Sequence record: MK250019.1 | DNA: 64,000 nt | Direction: 5' to 3' (one strand) | Part shown: positions 3,006 to 55,922 of the stretch, one piece after another | Position numbering within the stretch: position 1 is the first letter of the stretch | Layout of the letters: every line of letters begins with the position of its first letter | Translations under genes and position numbers: made by a program | The notes under the pieces: generated by a model | What the model saw: only the letters and a program-made list of their open reading frames with translations | Told to the model about the DNA's origin: nothing | Databases searched by the model: none

Positions 3006-3377
3006 ATGGTAACAATAAATATACAAATGGTAACAATATTTATAGGATTTATAGGATTTGTATTATGTCTTATACAATTAATCATATTTGATTGGTTCAC
3101 TAAAAAATTTACATATACAAATAAATGGTTTATATATAATAATTTAGAAAAAAGAGAAGATTCAAAGCCAATAAAAATAAAACGGTATTGGTATATCTTA
3201 TATTGTATATGTATGTTAATACCTATAGTTAATTTATTTTTATTCATAATCTGTTTCTTCATGTCATTCATGATGAGAATGGATTATAATTACTATTATA
3301 ATGGAAATAATATTACAGTATTAACATTAATAAAATTTAAAAATAAATTAAAATATTATTTAAATACCGAAGTATAA
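3006..3377 (+). CDS. hypothetical membrane protein
   Basis: two hydrophobic segments; TAA stop. Confidence 0.7.
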   Translation: MVTINIQMVTIFIGFIGFVLCLIQLIIFDWFTKKFTYTNKWFIYNNLEKREDSKPIKIKRYWYILYCICMLIPIVNLFLFIICFFMSFMMRMDYNYYYNGNNITVLTLIKFKNKLKYYLNTEV

Positions 3378-15454: not shown

Positions 15455-17029
15455 ATGAATAAAAATATGGTTTATAGTGCTAATGAAGCAACTTCTTTAA
15501 CTGATAAAGTTGCAGATTTTACAAAGGGTAAAAACATTCACTTTGGTTCTGGTGCATTTGAAGAATAGAAAGTTGTTGCTATTGCAACAGCAGCTGAATC
15601 TGATGCAAAGGTTCGTTTCGTATATGATGCAATAGGTGATTCTGGTATGGTATTTGTTGGTAATCAACTTGCATCTTCTAAGATTCTTGACATTACAACA
15701 AATAAAGTAGCAAAGAAACATTTTGATCCTGAAACTGGTAATTATGTAGAATCAACTACAGAAAAAGTTGCAACTAAGGTAACAGTTACATGGTTTGGTT
15801 CTCAGGAAGATCCAAAAGATAATGTTGTAAAGACACAGACATGGACTACTGTATTTGATGTTATTGATACAGATACAGTAAAAGCAATGATTGATAAAGC
15901 TTCAGCAGATTTAAATAAATCAGTTGATGATTTAAAAACAAAGCATGAAGCAGACGTTTTACGTTTAGATACATCAGTTAACGGCATTGAGACACTTCTT
16001 AAGAGCGATGTAGTTTCAGCTGACACGGGTAGTGCACTTACAGTAACTCATACTGCTGCTGATGCAACAGGTTATAAGACTTATAAGGTTGCAGTTAACG
16101 TAGATGATGCAGAAGGTTCAACTATTAAGGTTGTAGATAATAAGATTAAGATTGCAAAGTATGCAATTAAGCAGGTTGCTGCGGATTCTATGGAAAAAGA
16201 TGCAGATACTAATGAAACAAAGTATGCATCTGAATATCAGTTAATGATGACTGATGCTGATGGTGTTACAAAGGCAGTTGGTGATAAGATTAACATTGCA
16301 AAAGACTTCTTAGTAACTAAGGCACATGTATGTACATTTAAGTATGTTGCTGAAAATGGCGCAGAAATTAAGTATGATGTACAACTTGAAGATCAATGGG
16401 GTAATTCTCCAGCAGTTAAATATGGAGATGAAGTAACATCAGAAAATCAGCTTCCATGGTCTAAGAATCAGGATGGTACATGGGAACAAGCACGTCTTGG
16501 TTTCGGTATTAAGTATGGTCATTCATATTTACACTTAGTTATCAATACTAAGCCAACTAATACAAAAGCTGCTAGACTTGATGATGTTTATCTTGATTTT
16601 ACAGAAATCTTTACAACATTCAAGGGTGATGATAAATTCATCAAGGTTGAGAATGGCGTTGTTTCTTTGGATATTGATGCTGTTTCATCTAAAGTTGATG
16701 AAAAACTTAAGGTTAATGATACATTCACAGAACTTAAGGCAAAAGATGAAGCAATTGAAGGTCGTCTTAATGGATTAGATACATCTGTAAGCAATATTGA
16801 GAAATCATATGTAACAGATGCATCTCTTGAAGCGCCAAAGGCAGATAATGCACAGTTCAATACTTTAAAGATTACAAATCATAAAGTTGTTGATGGTGTT
16901 GCAAAAGACACAGAGGTTACTGTAGATGTTGCAAATGAAAAATATTATGCAGGATTAAATACAGCATTAAATACACTTACAGAAAATGATAAACATCTTT
17001 CTGCACTTCTTACATGGGAAGAACTCTAA
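15455..17029 (+). CDS. putative virion fibre/structural protein 2 (524 aa, code 15)
   Basis: ATG 15455 in frame via one TAG; SSKILDITT motif; ends LTWEEL. Confidence 0.75.
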
Positions 17030-17131
17030 TTAATTTTTAATTAACTTTAATAATATAATGGGATAACTGATAATAATTCAATTATCCCATTTTTTAGATA
17101 AATAAAATAAAATATAAACTTTATTAATAAT

Positions 17132-19075
17132 ATGGCTATTACTATTAAAAAGTCAATGATTAATGGTGCTCCAGTTATTTTTGGCGCTCCTGCTGATGCA
17201 GATACTGCAAAAGGTGTAGAAGTAAAATTTGGTTATGGTACACTTGAGAATGTACTTGCAAAAGTTGGTACTGCAGATGACGGCGTAATCTATTTCGGTT
17301 ATGATGATGCTAAATCAACTGGTGCAATTGTTTCACGCGGTAAACTTGTTTCTTCAAAAATTCTTGATATTACAACAACTGCTGCTGTAACAGGAGAAGG
17401 TGGTAAAGTAACAAAAGAAGCATAGATTGTAATTTCTTATATTGATACTGATAAGTCTGTTAAAACATTAGAAATTCCTGTTTCTGCTGATGGTAAATTA
17501 AAAGATCTTGCTGATAAGATTGAAGCTCTTAAAACATTAGTAGGTACAAAGGCAGATACTAAAGATACTGATACAGTATTCGGTGCAATTGCAAAAGAAA
17601 CAGATCGTGCAACTACTAAAGAAACTGCAATTTCCGATCTTCTTGGAACAAAGGATGATGATAAAACAAAAGAAACTGCATTTGGTAAGATTGCTACTGA
17701 AGTAGCGCGTGCAACTGATGCAGAAACAGGATTATCAAATAGAATCAAAACACTTGAAGATAAAAAGTATACAACAGTTAATGCAAAAACAGATGGTCAT
17801 GTAAAAGTTGCTGTTTCTGATGATAATGTTGTAACTGTAACAGAAGATGATATTGCATCTGCTGCACTTCTTGGTACTGTTGATGATGTTGCTGGTACTG
17901 CAACTGCATTTGGAAAGATTGCTAATGAAACAACGCGTGCAACTGATGTTGAAGGTAAGTTAGATACTCGTGTAACTAATATTGAAACACTTATAGGTGA
18001 TGCAGAAAAGCCAGATGAAGATAAAGTAATCAATAAAGTAACTGAAGTAATTGATTGGTTCAAAGGCGTTTCTGAAACCGAAAAAGGTGCAACACTTATT
18101 TCTGATGTTGCTGCTAATAAAACAGCTATTGGTACAAAAACTGTAGAAAATACTAATAGCATTTATAAGAGAATTGAAGATCTTGAAGCAAAGAAACATA
18201 CAAAAAGTGATGTAACTGCTGATGCTGGTAAATGTGTATCAGGTATTCGTGTTGATGAAAATGGTGCATTAACAATTGATCAAGCTGAATTATCTGCTGG
18301 TAATATTAATGCTACTGCAATTGTAGCAGGTGATGATACTGTTGCAGTTGAAGGTGATAAGGTTGCTTCATAGATTGAAAGTTTAGCTAAGTCTATTAAG
18401 ACTGCTACAAAGTCTGCTGATGATGCAATTAAGGCACTTGATGTTACAGATACTGCAGTAGAAGGAAAATATGTTTCTGCTGTTTCTGAAGAAGATGGTA
18501 AGATTACAGTTACACGTGCAGATCTTCCTACACTTTCTGTTAAGACAGGTTCAGAACAATTTGCAGCTGTTAATAACCATGAAGTTGAAATCAAGACTAC
18601 CGCATTAAATACTGTTGGTCTTACAAAGACTGAAGCCGGTAAATGGCAAGCAGGTACTGCTGATGCAAAATCAACTGGTCTTGCAACTGCTGCAGATGTT
18701 GCCGCAGAAATCGTATCAGATGAAGAGGTTATTGCAACAGCTCTTAATGACCATGAAAATCGTTTAAAGACAGTAGAAGGTAAAGAAATTACTGTTTCTT
18801 CTGCTAAGTATGATGTTGCTATTTCTGTTGCAGAAGTAAAAGATAGCGATGTTGTTACTACAGCTGCAACTAATTTCAATGTTACTGGTGGTAAAATTAC
18901 ATTTACTATTCATAATGGTGATAAAGCTGTTGCAGAAACAATTACTGCATATACAGAAGATACTGTTAAATCTCTTGTTGAACTTTATGCAAAGGAAAAA
19001 GCTCGTGCTGAAGCTGCAGAAGCTGATCTTGATAAGAGATTAACTTGGGTTGAATTGAATAAGCAAGACAAATAA
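17132..19075 (+). CDS. putative tail-fibre-like protein 3 (647 aa, code 15)
   Basis: TAG at 17423 and 18371 read through; repeats FGxIAxExxRAT; SSKILDITT; ends LTWVELNKQDK. Confidence 0.75.
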
Positions 19076-19857: not shown

Positions 19858-21513
19858 TTAATCTCTCTTTTTATATATTAAATATGGTGAATAACATTTT
19901 AAATAATCTTCCCTAATATCATCTTTATTACAATTTAGAAATTCTTTTAACATACTTTTATTAAATCTAAATTCACTACGTTTATAATTATAATAATTTA
20001 ATGTAAATTTAATTTTATCTGATTCTAATTTAAAATTTAATGTTTCATATAATTTTATATTATCAGTTTCTAAATTACAATTAACAATAATAGAATTATA
20101 AGTATAATTACATTTAAAATAATTTAATAATAGTTTTTCACAACCTATCACATATAAATTATTTTTATAACAAATTCTATTTAATATATAATTATTATCT
20201 GATATATTACTAAATGTCATACAACATAATAATTCATTATTCTTAAATAATCCTAATTTTATATCAGACTCAATATAATTATCAATATGATAAGTATTTA
20301 TAAAATCTTTACATATATTTTTATCTAATTCTTTAATGATACAATTATCTGAAAATACTTTCTGCTCAAGATGACAACTTCTTAATATAATATTTTCTAT
20401 TTTATCTATATTATAATGAATATCATCTTCCCAAAATGTTAACATCTATATATCAGTTTTAGATACTAAATCATATTTTACTTTAAATCTATTCTTACCA
20501 TTAATTCCGCAATGCCAATAAATTCCATTACATTCTATTGCAACTTTATAATCAGGTAAATAAAAATCAAATTCACGCGGTGATATTATATATCTAACAT
20601 GTTGTTCAAACTTTATATTATGTCTCTCCAATAATAATCTTATTTTATATTCTATAGACGTCTCTAAATTTTTTTCTGGATTACATATAGGACACATAAC
20701 AATATCTTTCTACTATCTATTAAAAAATGTATAATTCTTTATTGAAAATGGATTATGTATTTTACATTGATTATAAATTATAAATTCATTTTTATTATCT
20801 GAATATTTAATTTCATAACCACGTTTTAACCATTTATTTTCTATTGTTTTATGTTTATTAACTAATTTCTATTTAACATTATTTTCATTCTTATTCGCAC
20901 ATTCATTAGAACAATAATGTCTAAACCCTTCACTGAATCTATAAAACTTAACATATTTTCCACATGTAGGGCATACAGGACTTTTATTAATATGATTCTT
21001 CATTCGATATAAAATCTCCTGTATAACTGATTTATTCCTCTATAAATCATCATACCTATTCATCATGTAATCATATATACCAAATTGCTTTAACTTTTTA
21101 TTTTTACAATATTCAGATATTAATCTGTCATCTTTAATCATTAAATTCAATACATATTCATCATCAATATTTTCTTTCTACTTTACATCAGTTAATTTAT
21201 GTATTTTATTCGGATCATTTAATGAACATTTATATGAACAATATTGATTATAACCATATAAAAATCCTCTGAATAATAAAGGAATCTCTTTACCACATGT
21301 TTTACAATATAAATGTAAATCATCTGGTAATTTATAATATATCCTATATATGATTTCCTGTATATTTTTTACAGATTTAAATCTATTCATTAAATAATCA
21401 TATAAACCATGATCTTTTAACCATGATTCTTTTATTCTACATGTATTTAATTGAATTTTATTGTGTCTAAATACTGTTAATTTATCTATTATAATCTGAT
21501 CTGTTACTTCCAT
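19858..21513 (-). CDS. free-standing zinc-finger plus PD-(D/E)xK (Vsr/DUF559-like, Hef-like) putative homing endonuclease (551 aa, code 15)
   Basis: three track ORFs joined through 6 TAG in one frame; two CxxC...YCSxxC repeats; EFDFYLPDYKVAIECNGIYWH nuclease motif. Confidence 0.75.
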
Positions 21514-21609
21514 ATTTTTTATATTAATAAATGTTAAAAATGTTTTAATAAACAAATAACATATTTTACTATATAATTTAAAATTTGAATTAGAATTTAA
21601 TTGAAAAAC

Positions 21610-22422
21610 ATGGAAGAAAAGAAATATAAATTTTGTCAGATAGATCCAAATAATTGCACTGTTGAAGAACTTGAAGAAGAAGTAGAAAGACTTAAAAACT
21701 TAGGTGATTTTTACGAGACTAAACAGTTGGCACTTAAGAAATTTATTAATAGTGTTTACGGAGCAACCGCGAGCAAGTATTTCATTGCACATAACACAGC
21801 TGTTGCGGAATCTATTACACTTCAGGGACAGGATTTGAATCATTATTCAGAGAATTCTGTTAATGCATATTTTAGTGGTATATTTCAGAATGATACTGAA
21901 TTGCATAAGAAATTGGGTATTGATTCGGAAAAAGCAAAAAAAGTAAGTATTGCCAAGGGTAAAACAACAGAAACAGGTACGTTAGATGGACCCGAGTTTT
22001 CATATCTTGACGGAAACCAATCATTAACCGTGGCTGGTGATACTGACTCAACTAGCTGGAAATCAAGCATTTACGTTGATTCGGTTAAACTAAAGGTTCA
22101 AGATGCATTTAATAAATTTAAATATGAAAATAATGATACTGTATTAAAATTAAATAATGGTCAAGAAATTGTTCCAGTTCATAATCATAATATTTTATCA
22201 TATGTTGATCATGATGCTGAAGCTACATATAGACCGATAAAATATATTATGCGTCATAAAGTATATAATAAATCAAGGTTCAGAATTAAATCTAAATCAG
22301 GTAAAGAATTAGAAGTTACTGGTGATCATAGTATGATGATAATTCGTAATAATGAACTAATTACTGTTAAAGCAAAAGATATTTTAAAAACCGATAAAAT
22401 TATTACAATCGCAGGAGATTAA
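21610..22422 (+). CDS. polB: family B DNA polymerase middle fragment (motif B to GDTD) fused to N-intein
   Basis: KQLALKKFINSVYG (motif B), ITLQGQ, AGDTD, then Ser-initiated intein block A and TGDH block B; TAA stop. Confidence 0.9.
   Translation: MEEKKYKFCQIDPNNCTVEELEEEVERLKNLGDFYETKQLALKKFINSVYGATASKYFIAHNTAVAESITLQGQDLNHYSENSVNAYFSGIFQNDTELHKKLGIDSEKAKKVSIAKGKTTETGTLDGPEFSYLDGNQSLTVAGDTDSTSWKSSIYVDSVKLKVQDAFNKFKYENNDTVLKLNNGQEIVPVHNHNILSYVDHDAEATYRPIKYIMRHKVYNKSRFRIKSKSGKELEVTGDHSMMIIRNNELITVKAKDILKTDKIITIAGD
22048..22419 (+). mobile_element. split intein N-half (124 aa)
   Basis: begins with S right after GDTD; HINT-like 'KELEVTGDHSMMIIRN'. Confidence 0.85.
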
Positions 22423-22443
22423 ATTAAATGACATAACAGAAAT

Positions 22444-22686
22444 ATGATACCATATCGATCTAAAATAACTATTATAAGAAACAGTAATTTTAAAAAGCAT
22501 AATACATTATTAAATACTTTTTTGAAATTGATAGGAAGTAATTATCGTGATTTATATTATGCATTAAATCATGATTTGAATTGTATTACAATGAATGACA
22601 GATCAGAGATAAATGATAATCAAATTATATATGCGAAATATTTAGGTATTGACATTATTGATGAATCACTTAAGAGAATTAGTTAA
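22444..22686 (+). CDS. 80-aa hypothetical gene between split-intein halves
   Basis: ATG to TAA; C-terminus AKYLGIDIIDE weakly BRCT-like. Confidence 0.55.
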   Translation: MIPYRSKITIIRNSNFKKHNTLLNTFLKLIGSNYRDLYYALNHDLNCITMNDRSEINDNQIIYAKYLGIDIIDESLKRIS

Positions 22687-22777
22687 ATAGTATTATCGTG
22701 AAAAGTATTTCAATGAAGAAAATAATAAACTAATATTACAATATATTATATAAAATATATAATTAACAAAAGAAAAG

Positions 22778-22909
22778 ATGAATTACGATATACAAATAGA
22801 AGATATTGATGTAATAGAGCAATTAGAAGATTTCAATGATGAGTATGTATATGATATTGAAGTAGATGATACTCATACATTCTTTGCAAATGATATTCTT
22901 GCTCACAAT
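22778..22909 (+). mobile_element. split intein C-half (44 aa)
   Basis: blocks F/G ending His-Asn, Ser at +1. Confidence 0.9.
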
Positions 22910-23752
22910 TCAATATACGTAGAGTTTGGAAGAATTTGCCAACAATTAGATATTCCAGAGTCTGAATGTGCACAGTTTGTTGTTAATCTTTGGAATTATG
23001 GTTGTGGACCATATATGCAACAGAAATATGAAGAGTATGCGAAGAAATATAATTGTGATGTAAATATTCAGAATTTGGAGTTGGAGAAAATTGCGGATAC
23101 AACAATTTTAACATCAAAGAAACATTATGCAATGGCAGAATGCTTTAAGGAACCTAATATTTTCTTGGAACCAATGGAGGAAGTTGTTTATAAAGGTTTG
23201 GAAATTGTTCAAGGATCTACACCGCCATTTGCACGTGAATGTCAGAAAGATTTTACACGTTATATGTTGCAGTGGTATCAGACACATAAAGAACGTCCAC
23301 CTTATGAAGAAATTATATCTCGTATTAAGGGTTATAAACAGCAATTTTTATTTAAAGATCCTGCCGATATTTCAAAGGGAAGCTCGATAGGAAATTATCA
23401 GAAATTTGTATTGGATGATAAGAATAAGTTAGTGTTTGGTGAACATTGTCCTATTCAGGTTAAAGCTTCAGGAATTGCTAATTTTATTTTAAATCAGCCA
23501 AAGAATAAGAAATATAAGGTTAAATATAATCCTATTAAAACAGCAGATAAAGTAAAGTGGTATTATGCAAAAGATAGAACATATGATTGTTTTGCATTTT
23601 TGCCAGGTGCTTATCCGATTGAGTATGCACCGGAGATTGATTATGATAAGCAGTTTGAGAAAATGATTCTTGAGCCTTGTAATCGTATTATTAAAATTAT
23701 CGGTTATACGACATTAACATCTAATTTATGTTATACTGCTGCACTTTGGTAA
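22778..23752 (+). CDS. polB: C-intein (44 aa) fused to family B DNA polymerase C-terminal fragment
   Basis: VYDIEVDDTHTFFANDILAHN then SIYV; downstream LELE, KKHYA, YKGLEIVQGSTP polB motifs. Confidence 0.9.
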   Translation: MNYDIQIEDIDVIEQLEDFNDEYVYDIEVDDTHTFFANDILAHNSIYVEFGRICQQLDIPESECAQFVVNLWNYGCGPYMQQKYEEYAKKYNCDVNIQNLELEKIADTTILTSKKHYAMAECFKEPNIFLEPMEEVVYKGLEIVQGSTPPFARECQKDFTRYMLQWYQTHKERPPYEEIISRIKGYKQQFLFKDPADISKGSSIGNYQKFVLDDKNKLVFGEHCPIQVKASGIANFILNQPKNKKYKVKYNPIKTADKVKWYYAKDRTYDCFAFLPGAYPIEYAPEIDYDKQFEKMILEPCNRIIKIIGYTTLTSNLCYTAALW

Positions 23753-23779
23753 TTTTTATAATTAAAATATTTTAATAAA

Positions 23780-24205
23780 ATGACGGAAAACGAAATAATA
23801 GATGCTATATCATTTATTAATGCACATAAAGATATAGTTGGATATAATATAGCAAGAAAAGCAACTGAGTTGATTTATAAATATGATGGTTATCCAGATT
23901 TGGATGATATTGAACATAAGAGATTATATGATTTTTATGAAAAACATAAAGAAGTATGTAAAGGTGGAGATTCATATAGATTAATTGAATTATATACATG
24001 TGGATTTACTAATACTTATGTATGTAATGTATGTAATGAATCATATGATTATACTAATTATGATAAAGAATGTTGGTCAGATGGAAAGGGAGAGAAATTA
24101 CCATTTTCGTTTATTGAAGTTGGTACAGGTATCGGACCATGTATAACTATAGTATGTACAGAAAATAATGATTCTAAAGATATTACAGATATTGATTCAT
24201 GGTAA
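23780..24205 (+). CDS. hypothetical protein
   Basis: 141 aa ORF with Cys pairs. Confidence 0.65.
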   Translation: MTENEIIDAISFINAHKDIVGYNIARKATELIYKYDGYPDLDDIEHKRLYDFYEKHKEVCKGGDSYRLIELYTCGFTNTYVCNVCNESYDYTNYDKECWSDGKGEKLPFSFIEVGTGIGPCITIVCTENNDSKDITDIDSW

Positions 24206-24748: not shown

Positions 24749-26671
24749 ATGAATATCATAGACAATATTAATGAGAAAATAAATCCATGTGATGACTTTT
24801 ATAATTATGCTACAGGAAATTGGATAAAGAATAATCCACAACCTGATGAATATCCAACATGGAATGTATTTACAAAAATAGAAGAAGATAATATCGATAG
24901 GATTAGAGATATTATTACATCATCAAAAACTGATTCATCTGTAATTAATCACAAGATTAATGATTGTTATAATATTATTATGAATTATGATAAAAGAAAT
25001 AAAGATGGGAAGAAACCATTGATTTCTTATATCAATGAACATGTAAATAATCTTAAAACAAATATGGATGTAATTCTTGAATCTGCACGAAATAATATTG
25101 AAATGTTTTTTGATACATGGTTACAACCAGATAGTAAAGGATCAGGTAAATATGAAGTTGCTATATATCAGGATGGATTAGGTTTAGGAAATAAAGATTA
25201 CTATTTGAAAGATACTGAAGAAAATCAAAAATATATGAATGCATATTCACAATATATTATTGATTTATATGAATATCTGTATAATGATAATAATATTGCG
25301 TTAATGGAAAATAATAAGATATTATCAATAGAAAATTTATTGGCACCTGATTCATATTCAGTAGAAGAACTTCAAGATCCTATACTTAATTATAATAGAA
25401 TATCTGTTAATGAATTATCAGAAAAAACATGTTTTGATTGGCGATTATATTTAGATACATTAGGTTATACAGAAACAAATGAAGTTATTGTAAGTAATAT
25501 TGAATTTTTAAAGTGTGCATGTAAACTTCTCTTAACATTAGATACTTCTTATTTAAAGACTTTTTATGAATGGCAGGTAATTAATATTGCTGCAACAAAA
25601 CTTGATGATAAAATATATGACTTAGTGTTTAAGTATAGTCAGGTATTTACAGGTGCAAAAGTACAGTATCCGAAAGAAAAAAGAGCAATTAATAAGATTA
25701 ATAGTGTTTTTTTCGAAGTCATCGGACAAATTTATGTTAAAAAGTATTTTAATAAAGATTCAAAGAATGATGTTATTAATATTATTGAAAATTTAAAGTC
25801 ATCATTTGAAACTATTATAAATAGTCAAACATGGATGAGTAATGAAACAAAAGAAAAAGCATTAGATAAATTACATGCAATGAAACTTAAAATAGGGTAT
25901 CCAGATAAATTTGAAGATTTTTCTGATATTCCTATTGATATTAATTTAACATATTTTGAAAATTCATTAAATATTCAGGAATATTTTAGAAAGAAAAATA
26001 TGGAAAAACATTATAATAAGGAAATTGATTATAATGAATGGTATATGGATCCTCAGACTATTAATGCTTATTATGATTGTATTCAAAATGAGATTTGTTT
26101 TCCTGCTGGTATTCTTCAATATCCATTTTATGATCCTAATAGAGATCCTGAATATAATTATGGAGCAATAGGTACAATTATAGCACATGAAATGACACAT
26201 GCTTTTGATAATCATGGACGACATTATGATAAACATGGTATACTGAATGACTGGTGGACTGAAAGTGATTCTAATAAATTCAATGAATTAACAGATATAA
26301 CAAAAGAACGATTTAATAATCTTGAAGCTTTACCAGGATTAAAATGTGATGGTTCTTTAACTTTGGGTGAAAATATAGCAGATTATGGTGGATTGAAGAT
26401 TGCATATTATGCATGTAAAAATATTATGAAACATGGAATATGTACAACAAAAATTTGGGAACATAAATTCTTTTTAGCATATGCAAATAATTGGTCTGAA
26501 ATTACAACTGATGAAGCTATTAAGAATCTGGTCGCAAATAATGAACATACTATTAATCGATTACGTGTAAATGGAACATTACCTATGTTTACACCTTGGA
26601 TAGATTATTATAATGTAAAAAAGACAAATAAATTGTATTTGGATATAGACAAACGTGCAAAAATCTGGTAA
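24749..26671 (+). CDS. pepO: M13 family (PepO/neprilysin-like) zinc metalloendopeptidase
   Basis: PCDDFY, NAYY, HEMTH, GENIAD motifs. Confidence 0.95.
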   Translation: MNIIDNINEKINPCDDFYNYATGNWIKNNPQPDEYPTWNVFTKIEEDNIDRIRDIITSSKTDSSVINHKINDCYNIIMNYDKRNKDGKKPLISYINEHVNNLKTNMDVILESARNNIEMFFDTWLQPDSKGSGKYEVAIYQDGLGLGNKDYYLKDTEENQKYMNAYSQYIIDLYEYLYNDNNIALMENNKILSIENLLAPDSYSVEELQDPILNYNRISVNELSEKTCFDWRLYLDTLGYTETNEVIVSNIEFLKCACKLLLTLDTSYLKTFYEWQVINIAATKLDDKIYDLVFKYSQVFTGAKVQYPKEKRAINKINSVFFEVIGQIYVKKYFNKDSKNDVINIIENLKSSFETIINSQTWMSNETKEKALDKLHAMKLKIGYPDKFEDFSDIPIDINLTYFENSLNIQEYFRKKNMEKHYNKEIDYNEWYMDPQTINAYYDCIQNEICFPAGILQYPFYDPNRDPEYNYGAIGTIIAHEMTHAFDNHGRHYDKHGILNDWWTESDSNKFNELTDITKERFNNLEALPGLKCDGSLTLGENIADYGGLKIAYYACKNIMKHGICTTKIWEHKFFLAYANNWSEITTDEAIKNLVANNEHTINRLRVNGTLPMFTPWIDYYNVKKTNKLYLDIDKRAKIW

Positions 26672-33397: not shown

Positions 33398-33469
33398 TAT
33401 AAATTTTATTAACATAAGGATATTATCAAATTTAATTCTTTGATAATATCCTTTTTATTTTTATCTACT

Positions 33470-34282
33470 ATGAAATTTAAAAATTTAGAAGATAGGATGT
33501 TATACCTAAGAAGTTTAACAGACTATAAACTTATTCCAAATGATTATGTTTTAATTATGCTTGATGGCAGATCTTTTTCATCTACAATTAAACGGTATTT
33601 CAAAAAACCATTTGATGATACATTTATTAATATTATGAATGAAACTGCATTATATTTGTGTAATAATGTACAAGGTTGTAAATTTGCATATGTACAATCT
33701 GATGAAATTTCATTAATATTAACAGATTTTGAAACACCAGAAACAGACTCATTTTTTGGATATAGATTAGAAAAAATTTTATCATTATGTGCATCTATTG
33801 CAACATCTAAATTTAATCAATTAATGACAATTGAAGCGATTAATCGTTGTAATAAAGACACATATAATAAAGATGAAATTTTCAATTTAATTATGGATAT
33901 GAAATTGCATCAGTTTGATTGTAAAGCATGGAATGTTTCATCATATAATGATATATTTGCATGGCTACAATATCGTCAAAATGATTGTGAACGAAATAGT
34001 AAACAACAAACAGCAAGAGCATATCTATCTCATAAAGAATGTACAGGTAAACAAGCAGATGAACAAATTTCAGTACTAAAAGATAAGTATAATATTGATT
34101 GGAATGATTTTGATGATGGGGAAAAATATGGACGCTTCATTTATAAAGAGGAAGTTCATATGAAATCAGAGCAGTTTGGAGAGTTTATCAGAGATAAATT
34201 TGTAGTTCACAATGCATGGTTACTGCGTGATGAAAATGGTAAGAAAAACTTCGAAAAACTATCAAAAATTCCACAAAAATGA
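33470..34282 (+). CDS. thg1: tRNA(His) guanylyltransferase Thg1-like 3'-5' polymerase
   Basis: LDGRSFS, KPFD, YVQSDEISL, FDCK, RQNDCERNS. Confidence 0.9.
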   Translation: MKFKNLEDRMLYLRSLTDYKLIPNDYVLIMLDGRSFSSTIKRYFKKPFDDTFINIMNETALYLCNNVQGCKFAYVQSDEISLILTDFETPETDSFFGYRLEKILSLCASIATSKFNQLMTIEAINRCNKDTYNKDEIFNLIMDMKLHQFDCKAWNVSSYNDIFAWLQYRQNDCERNSKQQTARAYLSHKECTGKQADEQISVLKDKYNIDWNDFDDGEKYGRFIYKEEVHMKSEQFGEFIRDKFVVHNAWLLRDENGKKNFEKLSKIPQK

Positions 34283-41527: not shown

Positions 41528-42649
41528 ATGGAAAATTCAAATGTAGCAATGTTTAATGATAAGGGTCAGGTAGAAACCCTTACTCAAAGTCAGTATAACT
41601 ATGATCAGCGAATTGCTGTTATGTCTGCTGATGAGAAAGCAAAGTATTTACAGAAGACGGAGAAGCTGGACCGTCATGATATGACTACAGTAACTTCATA
41701 TGGTAAAGAATTGAGTTCTGTTATTTCCCGGAATGGCGATAATCTTCTTAATTCTGTTCGTGGAGATAATTCGTCTGTGGTTGTACAGCTTACAAATGAA
41801 CTTCTTAGTCAGCTTAATCTTATTGATATTGATGAGATTAATACTAATACTCGATGGAAGAAATTCTGGAGAAACTTCCCTATTATTGGGAAGATGATGA
41901 CTTCTGTTGAGTCTATTATGACTAAGTATGATACTATTAAAGATAGTGTTACAAAGATTGGTGAAAAGATTGATACTGCACGTACAGTTGCATTACGTGA
42001 TAATTCAACACTTAATCAGATTTTTGACGCTAACGTTTCATATATTGAGCAAATTCGTGAACTTATTCTTGCTGCAAAGATTCGTGAACAGTCAGTTAAG
42101 GATGAACTTGAAAACATGAAGGCTCATGCTAATGATTATGAGATGTATGAGATTAATGATACCCAAAATTTCGTTAATCAAATTCAGAAGAAGATTGTTG
42201 ATATGGAAACAACTGAATATGTTTTGACACAGAACCTTCTTCAGATCCGTGCAACACAGCAGAATAATGTTGCAATCGCAGATAAGTCTGATAATATTGT
42301 AAATAATGTTTTGCCATTGTGGAAGAATCAGATTTCTATCAGTATTATTATGAATAATCAGAAGAATTCTATTGAGGCACAGCAAAAGATTACTGATACA
42401 ACTAATAAGATTTTGCGTGAGAATGCAAAGGCACTTCATATGAATTCTGTTAATGTTGCTAAGGCAAGTGAAGAGTCTGTTATTAAGCTTGATACACTTA
42501 AGGACACTACACAGGAACTTATTCAGACAATTCAGGAAGTTAAGAATATTCATGATCGTGGAGCAGAAGAGCGTAAGGAATATGAATCTCATTTGCGTGA
42601 GTTTGCACGTCAACTTGAAATTTCATTAACAGATAACGATAATAAGTAA
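41528..42649 (+). CDS. telA: toxic anion resistance protein (TelA/KlaA family)
   Basis: helical 373 aa with YGK, IRATQQNN, LPLWKNQI, NAKALHMNS patterns. Confidence 0.85.
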   Translation: MENSNVAMFNDKGQVETLTQSQYNYDQRIAVMSADEKAKYLQKTEKLDRHDMTTVTSYGKELSSVISRNGDNLLNSVRGDNSSVVVQLTNELLSQLNLIDIDEINTNTRWKKFWRNFPIIGKMMTSVESIMTKYDTIKDSVTKIGEKIDTARTVALRDNSTLNQIFDANVSYIEQIRELILAAKIREQSVKDELENMKAHANDYEMYEINDTQNFVNQIQKKIVDMETTEYVLTQNLLQIRATQQNNVAIADKSDNIVNNVLPLWKNQISISIIMNNQKNSIEAQQKITDTTNKILRENAKALHMNSVNVAKASEESVIKLDTLKDTTQELIQTIQEVKNIHDRGAEERKEYESHLREFARQLEISLTDNDNK

Positions 42650-44224: not shown

Positions 44225-44293
44225 TTAAAAATAAGTTAAACAATTAACATATATTTGAGTATAATAATTAAACAAAAATTGATTTTTTTAAAT

Positions 44294-46333
44294 ATGCAAA
44301 AAGGTAATATTGGAGTTACTAGTTAGGATATTTTTCCATTAATCAAGAAATTTATGTATAATGATCAGGATATTTTTATCCGTGAGATCGTAAGTAATGC
44401 AGTTGACGCATCAGAGAAGTTAATTAAAGTTATTAGTGCAAATGAGTATACAGCAAATCCAGATGATTTAAAAGTTACAGTTACTATTAATCATGAAGAT
44501 AATACTATTACTGTTTCTGATATGGGTATTGGTATGACTGCTGATGAAATAGAAAAGTACATTAATCAGATTGCATTTTCAGGAGCAAATGACTTCTTAG
44601 AGAAATATAAGGATACACAGATTATTGGTCATTTTGGACTTGGATTTTATTCAAGCTTTATGGTAAGTTCAAAAGTTGAAATTGTATCAAAGTCATATAA
44701 AGAGAATTCAAAAGCATGTAGATGGACATGTGAAGGAACTACAGAGTTTACACTTAAGGATGATGATAAAGAATCTGTAGGTACCGATGTAATTATGCAT
44801 ATTTCTGATGAATATAAGGAGTATGTAAATGAAAGTAAACTTATGGAACTTTTAAAGAAGTACGCAGAATATTTACCTATTCAAATTTATCTTAAAGATG
44901 TTCCTGCACCAACTACTGATTCATCTACCGGTGAAGTTACATATCCAGAATCACATGAAACAAAAATTACACGAGATGAACCATTGTGGTTAAAATCTGC
45001 ATCAGAACTTAAAGATGAAGATTATATTAAGTTCTATAAGGAAACATTCCCTAATAGACCTGAACCACTTTTCTGGATTCATATTAATATTGATACACCG
45101 TTTACATTTAAGGGAATTCTTTATTTCCCTGCATTTGATCAGAAACATCCTATTTTTGAGCGTAAGCATCTTAATTTGTATTGTAATCGTGTATTTGTGA
45201 CAGATGATGTAGATGGAGTATTACCAGATTATTTGAGTCTTCTTCATGGTGTAATTGACTCTCCTGATATTCCATTGAATGTTTCTCGTTCAGTTCTTCA
45301 AAATGATGCTAATGTTAAGAAGATTAGTTCACATATTACAAATAAGGTTATGAGTTCACTTCGTACACTTATGAAGAAAGATAGAGAAACATATGAGAAA
45401 AAGTGGGAAACAATTAAAACCTTCATTAATCTAGGCGTTGTAACAGAACCTAATATTTTTGATAAAGCAAAGGATATTATTCTTCTTGTTGATACTGATA
45501 ATAAGATGTATACTTTTGATGAATATTATGATAAAGTATCAGAAACACAGAAAGATAAAGATGGTAAAATTGTATATTTGTATACATATGATACTGCTAC
45601 ACAATATACTTATATCGATGCTTTAAAGAAATACGGTTATAATATTCTGCTGTTTAATAGTCAATATGGAGCATTTGAAGTACATACATTTGAAATGAAA
45701 TTACAAGAAAAGAATGTAACATTTAAACGTATTGATGCAGATGTACCAGAAAACCTTATTAAGAAAGAAGAAGATACAACAAAGAAAGAAAAACCTGTAT
45801 CTGAGAATATCAAGAGTATGTTGGTATCTATGTTTGATTGTATTGAGCTAAATCTTCCTAAAATTACACATCAGTATATTGTTCAGCAAGATGGTAAAGA
45901 TGCACTGCCTATTACTATTGTTGCAGATGAGTTCTTCCGTCGTATGAAGGAAATGTCAATGCTTAATAATGCTGGTATGTATTTGGAAAATAATGCATCT
46001 ATTAAGATTATTATTAATGCAGATTCTAAAGTTGTAAAGAAGATTATTAAGATTGCAGAAAAAGAAATTGGTCAGCAAATTAATGATATTAATGAAAAAG
46101 TTAAAGATATTAATACAAGATTGGAAGCTGCTGATACAGATGATGCAAAGAATTCTATTAAAAAAGAACTTGATAACATTATTGCAGAGAAAAAGGAAAT
46201 TATTAATAAACATGCACATGCAGATAGTCATATTCATGAATTAATTGATATTGGTTTGTTACAGTATGGTTTATTATCAGGTGAAGATTTGGCAGCATTT
46301 GTTAAGAGATCTATAAAGATGATTGAAAAGTAA
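44294..46333 (+). CDS. htpG: Hsp90 chaperone HtpG (679 aa, code 15)
   Basis: MQKGNIGVTS-TAG-DIFPLIKKF matches the Bacteroidota HtpG N-terminus; REIVSNAVDA, DMGIGM, IGHFGLGFYS, LNVSR. Confidence 0.95.
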
Positions 46334-50234: not shown

Positions 50235-53200
50235 ATGAAGGTAACAAAACGTGATGGTAGTTTTGAGAATTATAGTGTTTAGACAGTTAAACGTGCAGTT
50301 AGAGAAGCGTTTAAGTCAACAAAGACTAAATACTCAAAAGACACAATTTCGAATATTGTAAGTTCTATTACGCCATATGATGGCATTCCTGTAGAAGAAA
50401 TACAGGATCAGATAGAAACAAGTTTGTATTCTCATGATCAGCCTAAAGTTGCAAAAGAATTTATTCTTTATCGCAATAAGAAGAAGGAAATCAGAGAATG
50501 GGTTGCTAATAAAGAAGCATTTATTGAAAGATATAAAAATGCATCAAATACTGCAAATAGTACAATTGATGATAATTCTAACGTATCATCTAAGAACATC
50601 GGTGTATTAAATGCAGAAATTCATAAAGGTGATAATATTCTTGTAAGTAGAGGAATGATTACAAGAAAATTAAAAGATTTATTCCCTGATTTTAAAGCAA
50701 AACAATATCAAAAAGATTTAAAAAATCATATTATCTATAAGAATGATGAATCAAGTTTTGCTGGTGCTATAAGTCCTTATTGTGTTAGTGTATCTATGTA
50801 TCCATTTCTTAATCATGGATTGGAAAAGATTGGAGGATTGTCATGTCATCCACAAAATCTTGATTCCTATTGTGGTATGTATGTAAATCTTGTATTTGCA
50901 GTTGCAGCACAATTTGCAGGAGCAGTAGCAACATCAGAATTCTTGGTATATTTTGATTATTTTGCACGAAAGGAATTTGGAGATGATTACTATTTGCATA
51001 GTAAAGAATTCTATAAGATTGGTCCAAAATATCGTAAGTTACTTAATGAATCTAATTACTGGTGTAAAGATGTAGATACACTTAGAAAACATGATTTTGG
51101 TACAGATGAATTAAATAAATTGAGAGATGAACTTGTTTATAATTCGGAACGACCATTATCTGATGAAGAACTTAAAGAATATGAAACAGAACTTTCTAAA
51201 TATGATGTAGAAGGTTCAATAAAAGATTTTACAAATCCTATTAAGATTGGTGATGGTACAAGAACTATTGGTTCATGTATACAACAATTCTTCCAACAAG
51301 TAGTGTGAATTGAACGCACCCCTAATCGGTGACGATTAGGTAAACTCCATGTGAATTGCAGGGACTCTAAAATAATGAAGAAAATAATTTAATATTTTGA
51401 TTAAAAATATATACAACTTATTATAAATATTAAAATAATAGTATATATTACATGAAAATTACAGATAATAATATAGATGAAATAAAACATATGTATATTG
51501 ATGAACATCGTTCATATCAAGAAATTGCTGATTATTATAATGCAACAATATCATAGGTTAAAAATTTTTTATAGTCTAGATAGATAAAACGAAGATTTGC
51601 GCAAAGTAAATTAAATCAAGAATAGTTTGATAAAATTAAAGATTTATATTTAGGTGATAAAAAATATCCTGTATCTAAAATTTCAAAAATGTTAAATATA
51701 AAAGAATCAATAATAAGAAATTATATATTTGATAATAAATTAACAAGAAAAGAAACAGGAGATGAACGACGTTTAACAATACCATATGAAACACTATATG
51801 ATTTATATATAATTAAAAAGTTAGATAAAAATGAAATTTAGGAAAAATTAAATATATGTCGACAAACTTTAAATAAAAATTTAAAATTTTATAAATTAAC
51901 CAATAAGTATTCAAATTATACAGATAATGATATTTGTAAAATGTATAAAGATGAATATAAAAGTTTATCAGATATAAATAATATTACAAATTTTCCTAAA
52001 TCACGAATAAGATAGATTTTAATAAAAAATAATATATAGTTACGAGATTATCGTTTAAGTTAGATGACAAAAAGTAAAGCATATTTTGAGTATGATATGA
52101 GTTTATTAAATAAGCAATCTTTATTAAAGCGTAATTGCTATAGTTATTTTAAATCTCATATATCAACACAAATAAAGAAAGAACGAAATATGTGTGAATG
52201 TTGCGGTTCAACAGAAAATTTACATTGTCATCATATTAAACCATATTCATTAATTGTTAATGAGATTATAAAAGAAAATAAAAATTTATCTGATACTGAA
52301 TTATATAATGTAATTACTCATGATTCTAGATTTTTAGATACAAATAATATTAAAGTTGTATGTGAAAAATGTCATTATACGATATTTCATTCATACCTTC
52401 ATTATCAAGGGAATCGTGCAGCCAAGCCTAATAATTAGGAAGGTTCAACGACTATCGAAAACATAGAATAAACAAATAAGAGTTTATTTGAAGAAGTGAG
52501 TAGAGTACATAACAAGTGTTATGGAAGTGCATGGCAACTTAATCTAATCAATTAAGTTGGAGAAATAGTCTAAACGAATTTTTAATTCCCTCTATTACTG
52601 AAATGTAATAGTTGTCTATAGAAATATAGAGCAGTTATAAACTGAATATAAATTAACGATTTATATTTAATATATTTGATTCAATTAACCAACCCGCAGC
52701 AAGTCGTGGTCTGCAATCTGCATTTGTAAATTTCTCTTATTTTGATAAGCCTTTCTTTGAAGGTATGTTTGGGGAATTTGTATTTCCAGATGAAGAAGGT
52801 ACAAGACCTTGTTGGGAAAGTGTTTCATGGTTGCAGAAAGATTTTATGATTTGGTTTAATAAAGAGCGCCTTCGTACTATAATCACTTTCCCTGTTGAAA
52901 GTTTTGCATTGGTATATAAGGATGGAAAGTTTGTAGATGAAGATTCTGCAGATTTTGTTGCAGAAGAATATTCTCGTGGTCATTCATTCTTTACTTATAT
53001 GTCAGATACTGTTGATTCATTATCAAGCTGCTGTTTCGATGGTGATACACCATTTATGTTTGTAGAACCTCTTAATATGGAAGAGCATGGTGGTAATAAT
53101 GCATATATGGTTTCAACTATTAAAGATGCATATGAAAAATATAAAGATGATATAATTAATGTATATCATATGAATTTTAATGGTACTACAGGTAAATGTA

Positions 53201-55791
53201 CAGGTGAATGGGTAAATGCAAAATTTGTAAAAGCACAAGCTATTCAGGAAGTACGAATTTATTTTAAACCAGATGATTTCAATCCAGATGAGTCAAGGAA
53301 TGTAATGAGAGTTACGCCGGATCATATATTCCCTGTTATTGATGATAATGGATTTATTACAGATAAAAATGCATATTTATTACAGACTGGAGATCAACTT
53401 ATTTTTGAATATGCACAATATATGGGATTATTTAGAGATGAATTTCCTGATAGAGATCAAGATTTAGTAAAACGTGCTATTTCAAAAGTTGAAATTGTAA
53501 ATCTTGATGAACCAAAGGATTATTATTGTGTAGAGTTATGTGATAAAAATATTGAACCATACTTTTTGTTACCTAATGGAAATATTACACATAACTGTCG
53601 CCTTAAGAATAAGATTCAAACAAAGGAATTTAATTTTACAAATGGTAACTTAGGGATCAACTTGGGTCCTTTATGTGCTTAATTGCTAATCAAGCAATGT
53701 ATTAATATAGCGATATTAATGCATCGGTGAAGCCTAAACATAAGTTGTGAAACTATATGCATGGTAATACCGAACCAAGTTAATAAATATGTTATAATTT
53801 TACATTTATAATATATGAATAATAAAATATTTACAATTTACAAAATATCATTTCCAAATGGAAAAGTATATATTGGTTAGACATATCATTATCATTAGAG
53901 AATTAAAGAACATTTAAATGAAATGAAACATAGTGATTATAAATTATATAGAGCTATGAGGAAATATAATATAAATGAAAATAATTTTTCTATAGTAGAA
54001 GAAAATATTTTAACATAGAACGATGCAGATAATAAAGAAATATATTATATCAATTTATATGATAGTTATAATAATGGATATAATTCTACATTAGGTGGAC
54101 ATGCTGCAACAATAACAAAAATAGGAGAAGAACATCCTAAAGCTATATTAAATGATAATGAATTATTAGAATTAAGAAAAATTAGATATTCTATGAAATA
54201 TACATTTGGAGAAGTATATGATATGTATAAAAATAAAATGTCAAAAAGTGGTTTTTCAAAATATTGGCATTATTATACAAGACCTGAAATCGGAGAAGAA
54301 TATAATACTGATGAAGTAAATAAATTTTATAAATCTGATAGGAGAACAAGAAGAGGTATATTACATGCAAATTCAAGAAATTTATCAGATGAAGAAGTTT
54401 TAAATATAAGAATACGATATTTTGTAAATGGTGAAAAAGAAGATGATATTTTTAAAAAATATAAACACTTATATTCAAAGAGTGGTTTTAATAAAATATT
54501 ATTTGGATAGTCATATATGCATGTAAAAATGCCTATTAAAACAGATAAGTGTAAATAGAAATTACCATAGTTATCAAAAGAAGAAGTAATTTCATTAAGA
54601 GAACAATATAATAATGGTAAGTCTATTAATGAATTAAAAGTTGGAAAATATGAAAAATATTCAATGAATAATTTTAGAAATATGTTAATAGGTAGAACAT
54701 ATAAAAATTATTAATGTGTGTGGAGGTCATCCCCTAAGTGATGAGCAGGAGGAGTAGGGCTACTATTGATACGTAGCAGTATTTTAGGAAACGAAGTACT
54801 TTAAATGCCGAAATAGTGCAATGTTTATTAACATAATAAACATAAGATATGACCCGGACCATATAGAAATATATGGAGAAAACGTCAAACAGGTTCAAAA
54901 TCTGTAATAACATTAAATCTTAGTCGTATAACACAAGATTGGTTTAATAGTGTTAAGAAAACAGGTGTAACAAAAGAAAATGTAGAAGAACATTATGATG
55001 AATTGTGTCATTATTTTGGTGATATTCTTGATAGAGTATACAAATATCATACTGCATATAATGAACTTCTATGGGATATGTATGATGCTGGTTTGCTTCC
55101 GGTATATAAAGCTGGATTTATTAGTTTGAATAAGCAATATTTAACAATTGGATTAAATGGTCTTAATCAAATGGCAGAATTTTTAGGAATTACATGCAAT
55201 ATAAATCCTCATTATGAAAAATTATGTCAAACAATATTTGGATATATTAAGCAGAAGAATCAAGAAGCTGCAGGTATGTTTAACGGACATAAGCTCACGT
55301 TTAATACCGAGTGCGTACCAGCGGAAAGTCTTGCAATAAAAAATTATAATTGGGATAAAGAAGATGGATATTGGGTAAGTGATGATACAAATCTTTATGC
55401 ATCTTATATTTTTAAACCAAATGACAAGAGCTTATCAATTTTCGATAAAATTACATTACATGGTCGTGATTATATCGGAGATTTCTTAGATGGTGGTTCT
55501 GCGGCTCATCTTAATTTATCAGAGCATTTATCTAAGAAACAAATAAAACATATCATGCAATTTGCAGCACAGGTAGGATGTCAGTATTGGACATTTAATG
55601 TACCTAACTGCAAGTGTGAAGATTGTGGTTACATATCTAAAACACCATTTGATAAGTGTCCAAAATGTGGATCAGTTCATATAAGTTTATATGACCGTAT
55701 CATTGGATATTTAACTAAAATTTCGAACTGGTCAGATGGACGTCAACAAGAACAAAAGACACGTGTTTATCTACATAGTGAAAATATTTAA
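50235..55791 (+). CDS. nrdD: anaerobic (class III) ribonucleoside-triphosphate reductase; exons 50235-51306, 52679-53657, 54885-55791; intein 53032-53595; code 15
   Basis: ATP cone MKVTKRDG (TAG at codon 16); spliced exons total 2958 nt in frame (985 aa precursor, 797 aa after intein removal); joins read QQVVYSINQPAA, LSSCCRL, NLGIQTGS; C-terminal CEDC/CPKC and RIIGYL. Confidence 0.93.
51307..52678 (+). mobile_element. group I intron 1 in nrdD (1372 nt)
   Basis: 5' exon ends U, intron ends G; P1 GUGU|G pairs with CGCAC with U.G at the splice site; AAUCGUGCAGCCAAG element; P7 GACUAU (52450) with AUAGUC (52565). Confidence 0.9.
51452..52471 (+). CDS. intron-encoded HNH homing endonuclease with N-terminal helix-turn-helix-like repeats (339 aa, code 15)
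   Basis: 9 in-frame TAG; CECCGSTENLHCHHIKP...NIKVVCEKCH. Confidence 0.85.
53032..53595 (+). mobile_element. cis mini-intein (188 aa) in NrdD between the two Cys of SSCC
   Basis: starts CFDGDT, VTPDH block B, ends ITHN, +1 Cys; removal restores LSSCCRL. Confidence 0.92.
53658..54884 (+). mobile_element. group I intron 2 in nrdD (1227 nt)
   Basis: exon AGGGAU pairs with GUCCUU with U.G at the splice site; terminal G at 54884; P7 GGUCAU (54725) with AUGACC (54849); join gives GGG AT|T CAA (G-I-Q). Confidence 0.88.
53815..54714 (+). CDS. intron-encoded GIY-YIG homing endonuclease (299 aa, code 15)
   Basis: TIYKISFPNGKVYIG-TAG-T, R..EH, E..YI..YDS.NNGYNST.GG; 5 in-frame TAG. Confidence 0.9.
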
Positions 55792-55815
55792 GTTTTTATA
55801 ACCTATTTTATTTTT

Positions 55816-55858
55816 AATAAGTTATAACATATACTTTATGTTATAACTTATTTTTATT
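55816..55858 (+). terminator. intrinsic terminator after nrdD
   Basis: aataagttataacata...tatgttataacttatt plus T-run. Confidence 0.75.
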
Positions 55859-55922
55859 TAATAGTATTAAAGGTTTATCCTATTATTCAATTAGATAAAT
55901 ATTATAAATGAAAATATAATAT

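Follow-up and report, generated by a model that had tools for sequence, protein, structure and literature searches.

Can a phage build its replicative DNA polymerase from genes that divide its catalytic motif C? The question is raised by positions 21610-23752 of a 64,000-nucleotide (nt) stretch of sequence record MK250019.1 (the window), where two genes share motif C of a family B DNA polymerase (PolB) and each carries one half of an intein. A first-pass annotation, made from the sequence without database searches, had read the locus as a PolB broken into at least three genes, with a trans-splicing split intein in motif C. Pfam matches, together with three PF00136 pieces in the complete genome of the phage, uphold the three-gene polymerase. 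We put at about 85% the probability that the locus encodes the middle and C-terminal parts of the only replicative PolB of phage Lak-A2, a T4 gp43-like enzyme made from three genes, whose chains would be trans-spliced and non-covalently assembled. By homology to tested systems, trans-splicing plus non-covalent assembly with a third chain is the best-supported mechanism.

Its sequence identifies the window (GC content, ~25%) as DNA of a Lak-A2-type megaphage of gut Prevotella, corresponding approximately to positions 323866-387865 of the complete 541-kb Lak-A2 genome. By tblastn and protein comparison, the product of the second gene (gene 2) shows 100% amino acid identity to Lak-A2 and Lak-C1; for that of the first (gene 1), only Lak-A2 (MK250019) reaches 100%, identity being 83% to Lak-A1 and Lak-C1 and 78% to Lak-B. 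Lak phages read TAG as glutamine (code 15) (PMC6784885), and the genome itself justifies the use of this code, because it merges open reading frames (ORFs) that are otherwise fragmented in the window: four minus-strand code 11 ORFs at 19858-21555 become a single 565-amino-acid (aa) protein with six TAG codons, and neighboring structural-like genes are also merged. Gene 1, gene 2, and an 80-aa ORF between them contain no TAG codons, and each terminates in TAA; their reading is therefore independent of the genetic code.

The split intein in motif C

Gene 1 (21610-22422, plus strand) encodes 146 aa of polymerase followed by a 124-aa N-intein (IntN). It could start at TTG 21601 or at ATG 21610; the latter is more likely, because Lak-B has an ATG at the matching position without the upstream extension. 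The middle extein (21610-22047) comprises the second fingers helix with motif B and the palm strand through A-G-D-T-D; it matches Pfam DNA_pol_B (positions 148-232, E = 2.5e-7) and was aligned with Tenacibaculum phage PTm1 and with gp43B1 of Aes123, a T4-like Aeromonas phage. The lysine of motif B (K-x-x-x-N-S-x-Y-G) is residue 43 from the ATG, which places the start of the gene ~42 aa ahead of the motif, rather than the ~35 aa given in the first-pass annotation. The extein ends with A-G-D-T-D at 22047, and IntN with its stop codon occupies 22048-22422: Ser1 is encoded at 22048-22050, the last residue ends at 22419, and a TAA follows at 22420-22422.

Gene 2 (22778-23752, plus strand) starts with an ATG and opens with a 44-aa C-intein (IntC; 22778-22909), whose closing His-Asn is followed by Ser+1 (22910-22912) and I-Y-V-E-F. 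Beginning with Ser+1, a 280-aa C extein with its stop codon (22910-23752) supplies the remaining palm and the thumb. The junctions are thus as originally described, with serine at both. Pfam DNA_pol_B recognizes the C extein weakly (positions 261-350; 18 bits versus a cutoff of 23), and tblastn found matches to it in 610 phage records annotated as DNA polymerase. The D-T-D of motif C lies in gene 1, and the motif is completed only on joining to the S-I-Y-V of gene 2. The intein halves sit on separate ORFs with their own starts and stops, the TAA at 22420 and the ATG at 22778, and the gap between the genes is 355 nt.

Both halves are recognizable as parts of a class 1 split intein (PF14890), with blocks A and B in IntN and blocks F and G in IntC. 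Matches to Intein_splicing cover positions 38-94 for IntN (E = 4e-8) and 117-155 for IntC (E = 9e-5); in a search of the Lak-A2 genome, chained matches in the frame of the N half reached 37.5-40.6 bits and the C half 30.4 (cutoff, 35.8). Sequence and alignment account for all nucleophiles and catalytic residues: Ser1, T91-G-D-H94 of block B, H43-N44 at the end of block G, and Ser+1. Neither half contains a cysteine. IntN, which ends T-D-K-I-I-T-I, also has an NX motif, R68-H69 (within I-M-R-H-K-V), that aligns with M-K-H of Aes123; a conserved His preceded by Arg or Lys is a signature of Ser1 inteins (PMC10189870). Block F of IntC reads V-Y-D-I-E-V. The proposed charge complementarity is also borne out: IntC has 14 Asp/Glu and no Lys/Arg, and IntN has 21 Lys/Arg versus 15 Asp/Glu overall and 9 versus 3 in its basic segment, residues 63-93.

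In phmmer searches of PDB sequences, the closest solved relative of both halves was 9HTH, the cysteine-less PolB1 split intein of Aes123 (E = 2.5e-9 for IntN, in an alignment that spans only residues 45-119 of 124, and E = 4.6e-6 for IntC). PolB16 OarG (8cpn) and gp41-1 (6qaz, E = 2.7e-4) came next for IntC, so that the likeness to the gp41-1 ending noted in the first-pass annotation is real, but gp41-1 is not the closest relative. An alignment of Lak sequences (Lak-A1, Lak-C1, Lak-B5, and the IMG/VR relative G001) with PTm1 and Aes123 shows a common insertion site and conservation of Ser1, the R/K-H of NX, T-x-x-H, V-Y-D-I-E of block F, H-N, and Ser+1. The exteins are conserved up to D-T-D-S and diverge from there, and every sequence has the same distance between this Ser and the conserved block that follows; therefore, Ser1 lies directly after D-T-D, where the boundary had first been drawn. 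The same alignment rejects a later intein start at S-I-Y-V-D-S, which would amount to a 6-aa insertion in motif C. In Lak-C1 (L007, ~3038-3040), the second codon of IntN is TAG, where Lak-A1 and Lak-B have a sense Gln codon; under the standard code, the Lak-C1 middle piece would stop right after D-T-D-S, with no intein.

IntN and IntC are predicted to bind each other. Complex prediction with both halves, five extein residues being kept on each, gave a median ipSAE interface score of 0.85 over three runs versus 0.00 for the best control; in a benchmark of the method, 51 of 78 solved complexes but only 2 of 108 mismatched pairs reached the mark. At least 90% of contacts were common across runs, the predicted local distance difference test (pLDDT) score of the partner was at least 79, and IntN residues next to Ser1 contact the C terminus of IntC in the model, as an assembled active site requires.

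Such a model supports binding, not chemistry, and the halves might no longer splice, acting only as a charge-driven, high-affinity dimerization module that holds the middle and C chains together (compare the interaction domains through which the NrdA fragments of phage Aeh1 come together). Ligation is not a prerequisite for the assembly of fragmented phage enzymes (PMC2988022, PMC3045599); in addition, the window allele has an atypical block A, and its N-lobe is hypervariable. We nevertheless consider this improbable. The splicing residues are kept in more than 100 diverged alleles (position 1 is mostly Ser, with Thr in three and Cys in one), which would be unexpected if binding were all that mattered, and an unspliced 168-aa HINT domain would sit in the β-hairpin that bears the catalytic aspartates. 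Moreover, the homologous Aes123 PolB1 intein has been shown to trans-splice, and does so very fast (PMC11923092).

The third chain

The window contains no exonuclease domain and no motif A, as the first-pass annotation had observed; a search elsewhere in the genome located the gene for both 221 kb away. It lies at Lak-A2 122983-124503 (minus strand) and encodes a 515-aa N-terminal PolB piece with PF03104 and PF00136 matches, covering the exonuclease and motif A. This N piece aligns to residues 114-501 of RB69 gp43 (E = 3e-30), includes D-x-x-S-L-Y-P-S, and extends ~9 residues beyond the end of that alignment. A phmmer search of the PDB with the middle extein alone gave no match at E ≤ 0.01, and the break was therefore mapped from the N-piece alignment and from the lysine of motif B, the equivalent of K560, which has 42 residues of the middle piece ahead of it. 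The break, which is intein-free, thus separates the two fingers helices at their tip. That fingers-domain splits occur in T4-related phages, as the first-pass annotation stated, is documented for the gp43A/B pair of phage 25 (PMC2988022).

In Lak-A2, the middle and C pieces occupy 345475-347614 on the plus strand, and the N piece lies 221 kb off on the opposite strand; in Lak-B, the N piece is ~6 kb downstream of the C piece, a permuted order. The three pieces are the only PF00136 matches in the complete Lak-A2 genome, which contains no intact polB. Downstream of the N piece is a gene for a Vsr-like or DUF7487 endonuclease. The seventh codon of the N-piece gene is TAG (ATG ATT ATT AAT AAA GAA TAG; L009 2980-3000, Lak-A2 ~124504-124524, minus strand); unlike the other two pieces, the N piece would need TAG suppression or an alternative start.

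A gene in three pieces amid homing endonucleases could also be a polymerase in decay, its pieces being remnants in a phage that replicates with its own split Pol III-like polymerase or that of its host; an additional, minimal split Pol III α is reported for jumbo phages of Group 2.2, Lak among them (PMC7824862). Selection argues otherwise. Ratios of nonsynonymous to synonymous substitution rates (dN/dS) among Lak genomes are 0.04-0.17 for the middle extein and 0.00-0.20 for the C extein, and those of the window IntN allele versus other alleles are 0.26-0.30: all PolB and intein pieces of the window are under purifying selection (0.00-0.30). The ORFs are intact, and their catalytic motifs are conserved in 353 metagenomic protein clusters and 15 complete genomes. 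With no other polB in the complete Lak-A2 genome, and with the same architecture yielding active enzyme in Aeromonas phages, we regard decay as very improbable.

A working polymerase in three chains would arise as follows. Homing-endonuclease activity would have fractured the polymerase into three independently translated genes. The basic IntN and acidic IntC would capture each other to form a HINT domain, and oxyester splicing would proceed through an N-O shift at Ser1, attack by Ser+1, and cyclization of Asn44. The product would be a 426-aa polypeptide with the restored motif C, A-G-D-T-D-S-I-Y-V, and this chain would join the 515-aa N chain non-covalently through the palm and both fingers helices, on the model of the fingertip-split gp43A/B of Aeromonas phages.

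Several points weigh against this scheme. Taken alone, each intein half falls short of the Pfam gathering score (33.7 and 22.7 bits versus 35.8), and block A of IntN (S-T-S-W-K-S) is atypical. The high complex score may partly reflect memory of solved inteins; we infer splicing of the Lak intein from homology and a model, and full compatibility of IntN with IntC is assumed despite the divergence of IntN described below. Given the TAG in the N-piece gene, the three chains may be made under different conditions. Contigs from RNA libraries overlap parts of the locus, but assembled contigs are not reads and may stem from DNA carryover, and they do not prove transcription.

Endonuclease genes and divergence of the N half

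All other Lak genomes examined have a Vsr-like endonuclease gene between the intein halves. In Lak-A1, Lak-B5, Lak-C1, and G001, this gene directly follows IntN and encodes 372 aa, with three to four in-frame TAG codons. Contigs L014 and L015 and a contig from run X2 have the IntN allele of the window, eight residues longer at its end, together with a 378-aa endonuclease. A free-standing endonuclease between the halves, of the type described by Dassa et al., is a feature of Lak-A1, Lak-B5, Lak-C1, G001, and L014 that the window lacks. What is left of it is a relic, the last 26 nt including the stop codon (22422-22447, plus strand), which overlaps the start of the 80-aa ORF and was recognized by blastn: the window from 22422 onward corresponds to L006 (Lak-A1) from 4472 onward and to L014 from 5472 onward, with ~1.1 kb missing in the window. 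Downstream of the deletion, identity to Lak-A1 is 99%, and the X2 contig has 1165 nt inserted between 22415 and 22422. A MAFFT global alignment of Lak-A2 with Lak-A1 placed the 1.1-kb gap wrongly, and the blastn coordinates were taken. Because the same IntN allele is accompanied by the 378-aa endonuclease in L014, L015, and the X2 contig, the window form is an endonuclease-deleted derivative. With the endonuclease gone, the split state would be frozen, which is step IV of the gene-breaking model of Dassa et al.

Assembly error does not explain the endonuclease-less layout: L013, a 39.9-kb contig assembled independently from a different run, is arranged identically, and a wastewater contig covers 21494-22450 with three mismatches, reaching 29 nt past the junction (just short of the 31-nt rule). 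Although the 80-aa ORF is in frame with gene 1 and gp43B-1 of Aes508 is annotated with a group I intron, it is scarcely credible that the halves are separated only by an assembly or annotation artifact in a contiguous cis mini-intein, or are rejoined as RNA by an intron, given 7, 15, and 19 stop codons in the three frames between the genes, the agreement with L013, the 1.1-kb endonuclease gene that sister genomes hold there, the N piece on the other strand, and the lack of any Rfam family in the whole window (gathering threshold) or in 21000-24000 at E ≤ 1.

A second endonuclease gene lies just upstream of the middle piece and is divergently transcribed (19858-21555, minus strand). Its 565-aa product, with the six in-frame TAG codons mentioned above, is a homing endonuclease by its match to the PHROG "homing endonuclease" family phrog_3339 (E = 1.6e-43) and Vsr-like by a weak match to Pfam Vsr. 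Lak-C1 (L007) and G001 (L002) lack ~980 bp of this gene (window 19883-20863). The endonuclease genes are TAG rich, with 3-9 in-frame codons each (window 19858-21555, 51452-52471, and 53815-54714; L006 3379-4497); the PolB pieces, the 80-aa ORF, and the pieces of a second fractured gene, nrdD, in the window have 0 or 1. Should TAG be read as a sense codon only in late infection, the endonucleases would be made in that phase alone. Lak and Aes123 have homologous endonucleases between their intein halves (35% identity to the Aes123 VSR endonuclease, E = 2e-36), and the PTm1 counterpart is homologous as well (E = 1e-20); the intein and endonuclease cassette is therefore assigned to one mobile-element family. 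Endonuclease genes at the PolB locus are gained and lost independently.

The conserved 80-aa ORF between the intein halves (22444-22686, plus strand; same frame as gene 1) was retained after the endonuclease deletion. It is represented by 263 protein clusters, mostly of exactly 80 aa, with dN/dS of 0.18-0.36. We found no Pfam, PHROG, or Atlas match for it; AlphaFold modeled it with modest confidence (pLDDT, 67.8), and a Foldseek search gave no PDB match at E ≤ 0.001. The notion that it is the N-terminal module of a decayed endonuclease was unsupported, since in BLASTP the 101-aa Lak-B version showed no relation to the 565-aa endonuclease (E = 3.2). In Lak-B5 (L008 5428-6128), a further ORF of 133 aa, bearing a Vsr-like nuclease motif (C-D-F-Y ... 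Y-Q-G-S-F-W-H), comes after this 101-aa counterpart; Lak-B thus has two endonuclease-like genes between the intein halves.

Divergence at the locus is concentrated in IntN. Between Lak-A2 and Lak-A1, nucleotide identity is 97-98% in the exteins and 100% in IntC but 66% in IntN (60% at the amino acid level; synonymous divergence is saturated). IntC is identical in Lak-A1, Lak-A2, Lak-C1, and G001, and the window IntN is 57-61% identical to the sister-genome alleles paired with this same IntC. The divergent tract starts at ~22015, within the extein and ~30 nt from its end, and extends as far as the deletion point (22421). The 353 metagenomic clusters that contain the middle piece and IntN present the same picture: IntN ranges from 119 to 136 aa, D-T-D is followed by Ser (Thr in three clusters, Cys in one), and where extein identity is 95-99%, IntN identity is 56-65%. 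Within IntN, conservation falls on the segments that face IntC in the model (~62-91 and 112-123) and variation on the N-lobe and block A.

This decoupled divergence of IntN looks like endonuclease-driven cassette exchange or co-conversion. A bolder reading, which we offer tentatively and think doubtful, is that the locus is a live homing battlefield: a cassette made up of IntN, the ~30 nt of N-extein before it, and the greater part of the endonuclease gene would be swapped between Lak genomes that are otherwise 97-100% identical, and the window copy would be an endonuclease-deleted escape allele. If this were true, one 44-aa IntC would naturally splice with IntN partners of only 45-65% identity, providing a natural series for the study of split-intein promiscuity and orthogonality, and the 80-aa ORF could be a new accessory factor of the cassette (for immunity to the endonuclease or control of IntC-gene expression).

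The second fractured gene of the window, nrdD (50235-56984), encodes the anaerobic ribonucleotide reductase. Its N piece (50235-51308) has ATP-cone/NrdD similarity; its middle piece (52765-53682) contains an apparent contiguous cis mini-intein, from C-F-D-G-D to I-T-H-N and then Cys, with a weak Intein_splicing match; and its C piece (55003-55791) matches NRDD (E = 1e-43). Between these pieces are an HNH-like gene with nine TAG codons (51452-52471) and a GIY-YIG gene with six (53815-54714), and after them comes a possible HNH-like gene (55923-56984), judged by eye from the sequence. Elsewhere in the window, 24749-26671, 33440-34282, 41528-42649, and 44255-46333 hold cellular-type genes that are unusual in phage: an M13 (neprilysin-like) peptidase, a Thg1-like tRNA-His guanylyltransferase, TelA, and an Hsp90/HtpG homologue. 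Two large Ala/Thr/Asp/Lys-rich proteins of 524 and 647 aa, encoded with TAG codons at 15455-19075, have a common N-terminal motif (S-S-K-I-L-D-I-T-T) and no Pfam match; they are probably late structural proteins. Promoter-like sites, of which 16 were found, were not above the shuffled expectation of 20.9, and the same scan found no terminators.

Known relatives and biological meaning

The combination of a three-gene polymerase and a split intein is already known from the annotations of Aes123, Aes508, and PTm1, and PolB split inteins of the same allele already serve as cysteine-less ligation tools; the novelty implied in the first-pass annotation is therefore not supported. GenBank JN377899 (Aes123) lists gp43A, gp43B1 ("putative N-intein"), a putative VSR endonuclease, and gp43B2 ("putative C-intein"). 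Like Lak, Aes123 and Aes508 have a T4-like PolB in three genes, with a fingertip split and a split intein at D-T-D|S. The Aes123 intein likewise has Ser1, Ser+1, the NX R/K-H, and no catalytic cysteine, with an IntN of ~120 aa and an IntC of ~40 aa, and the endonuclease between its halves is homologous to that in the endonuclease-bearing Lak alleles. It trans-splices and has been engineered, giving variants CL and CLm (PMC11923092, PMC12707363). The Aes123 genes differ in being contiguous and overlapping, with the endonuclease present, whereas the window copy is endonuclease deleted; Lak has the unrelated 80-aa ORF between the halves, and the Lak-A2 N gene is 221 kb off on the other strand. 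Lak is, in addition, a 541-kb code 15 megaphage of Bacteroidota.

The closest cultured relative of the polymerase is that of Tenacibaculum phages PTm1 and PTm5, annotated as "intein-containing split DNA polymerase precursor" (ORF236 to ORF241; 30-34% amino acid identity). Lak and PTm1 agree in both break points and in the intein site, and in PTm1, too, Vsr-like genes lie between the intein halves and at the first break; however, the PTm1 pieces are collinear within ~6 kb, the endonuclease is retained, and the phage uses the standard code and lacks the 80-aa ORF.

The fractured genes of Dassa et al. (2009), among them gp41-1, NrdJ-1, and IMPDH-1, have split inteins whose halves flank a free-standing endonuclease, GIY-YIG or Vsr-like. 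Lak shares this genomic logic and the endonuclease family, the sister Lak genomes are textbook cases, and the IntC ending resembles gp41-1; PolB, however, is not among the eight enzyme types of that paper. In its model, endonuclease loss and the uncoupling of parts are hypothetical late steps, and the window copy has lost its endonuclease.

The fingertip break has parallels of its own. The gp43A/B proteins of phages 25, 44RR, 31, 65, and 133 and an engineered split Pfu polymerase are likewise broken between the antiparallel fingers helices; the phage 25 proteins copurify and are active (PMC2988022), and the split Pfu enzyme retains full activity (PMC3061061). The cistrons of these phages, however, are 2 bp to 3 kb apart (PMC3061061), in contrast to 221 kb and opposite strands in Lak-A2. 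Nanoarchaeum equitans also has a naturally split intein in a family B polymerase, but this is the two-piece polymerase of a thermophilic archaeon. The Pseudomonas jumbo phages MIJ3 and PA5oct have a split PolB intein as well, with an HNH rather than a Vsr-like endonuclease (MIJ3 shows 22% identity over gene 1); in these systems the halves are either unlinked or set apart by an endonuclease. Further PolB inteins include CP21 PolB1, LCGC14 PolB2, GOM-OPS-1, and PolB16 OarG.

What is particular to the Lak locus is the deleted endonuclease, the conserved 80-aa ORF kept between the halves, the distant and permuted N gene, the hypervariability of IntN, and the presence of TAG in endonuclease genes but not in the polymerase genes of the window. 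The main text of the founding Lak paper does not mention "DNA polymerase" (PMC6784885), and in the literature searched the split polymerase appears to be undescribed for Lak phages. It will be miscalled by annotation pipelines that are set to code 11 or look for one polB gene. For protein ligation, the Lak intein (mesophilic, gut-temperature, free of cysteine in both halves, and with an IntN that has many natural variants) is no new class of tool but an addition to a family in which few members have so far been characterized (Aes123/CL/CLm, PolB16, LCGC14, and CP21).

For the biology of gene breaking, Lak genomes hold endonuclease-bearing and endonuclease-deleted states of a fractured gene in one population, with IntN divergence decoupled from that of the exteins and IntC. 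For Lak-A2 itself, its only PolB is the likely replicative enzyme, and this enzyme would depend on a predicted trans-splicing reaction and on a chain encoded 221 kb away.

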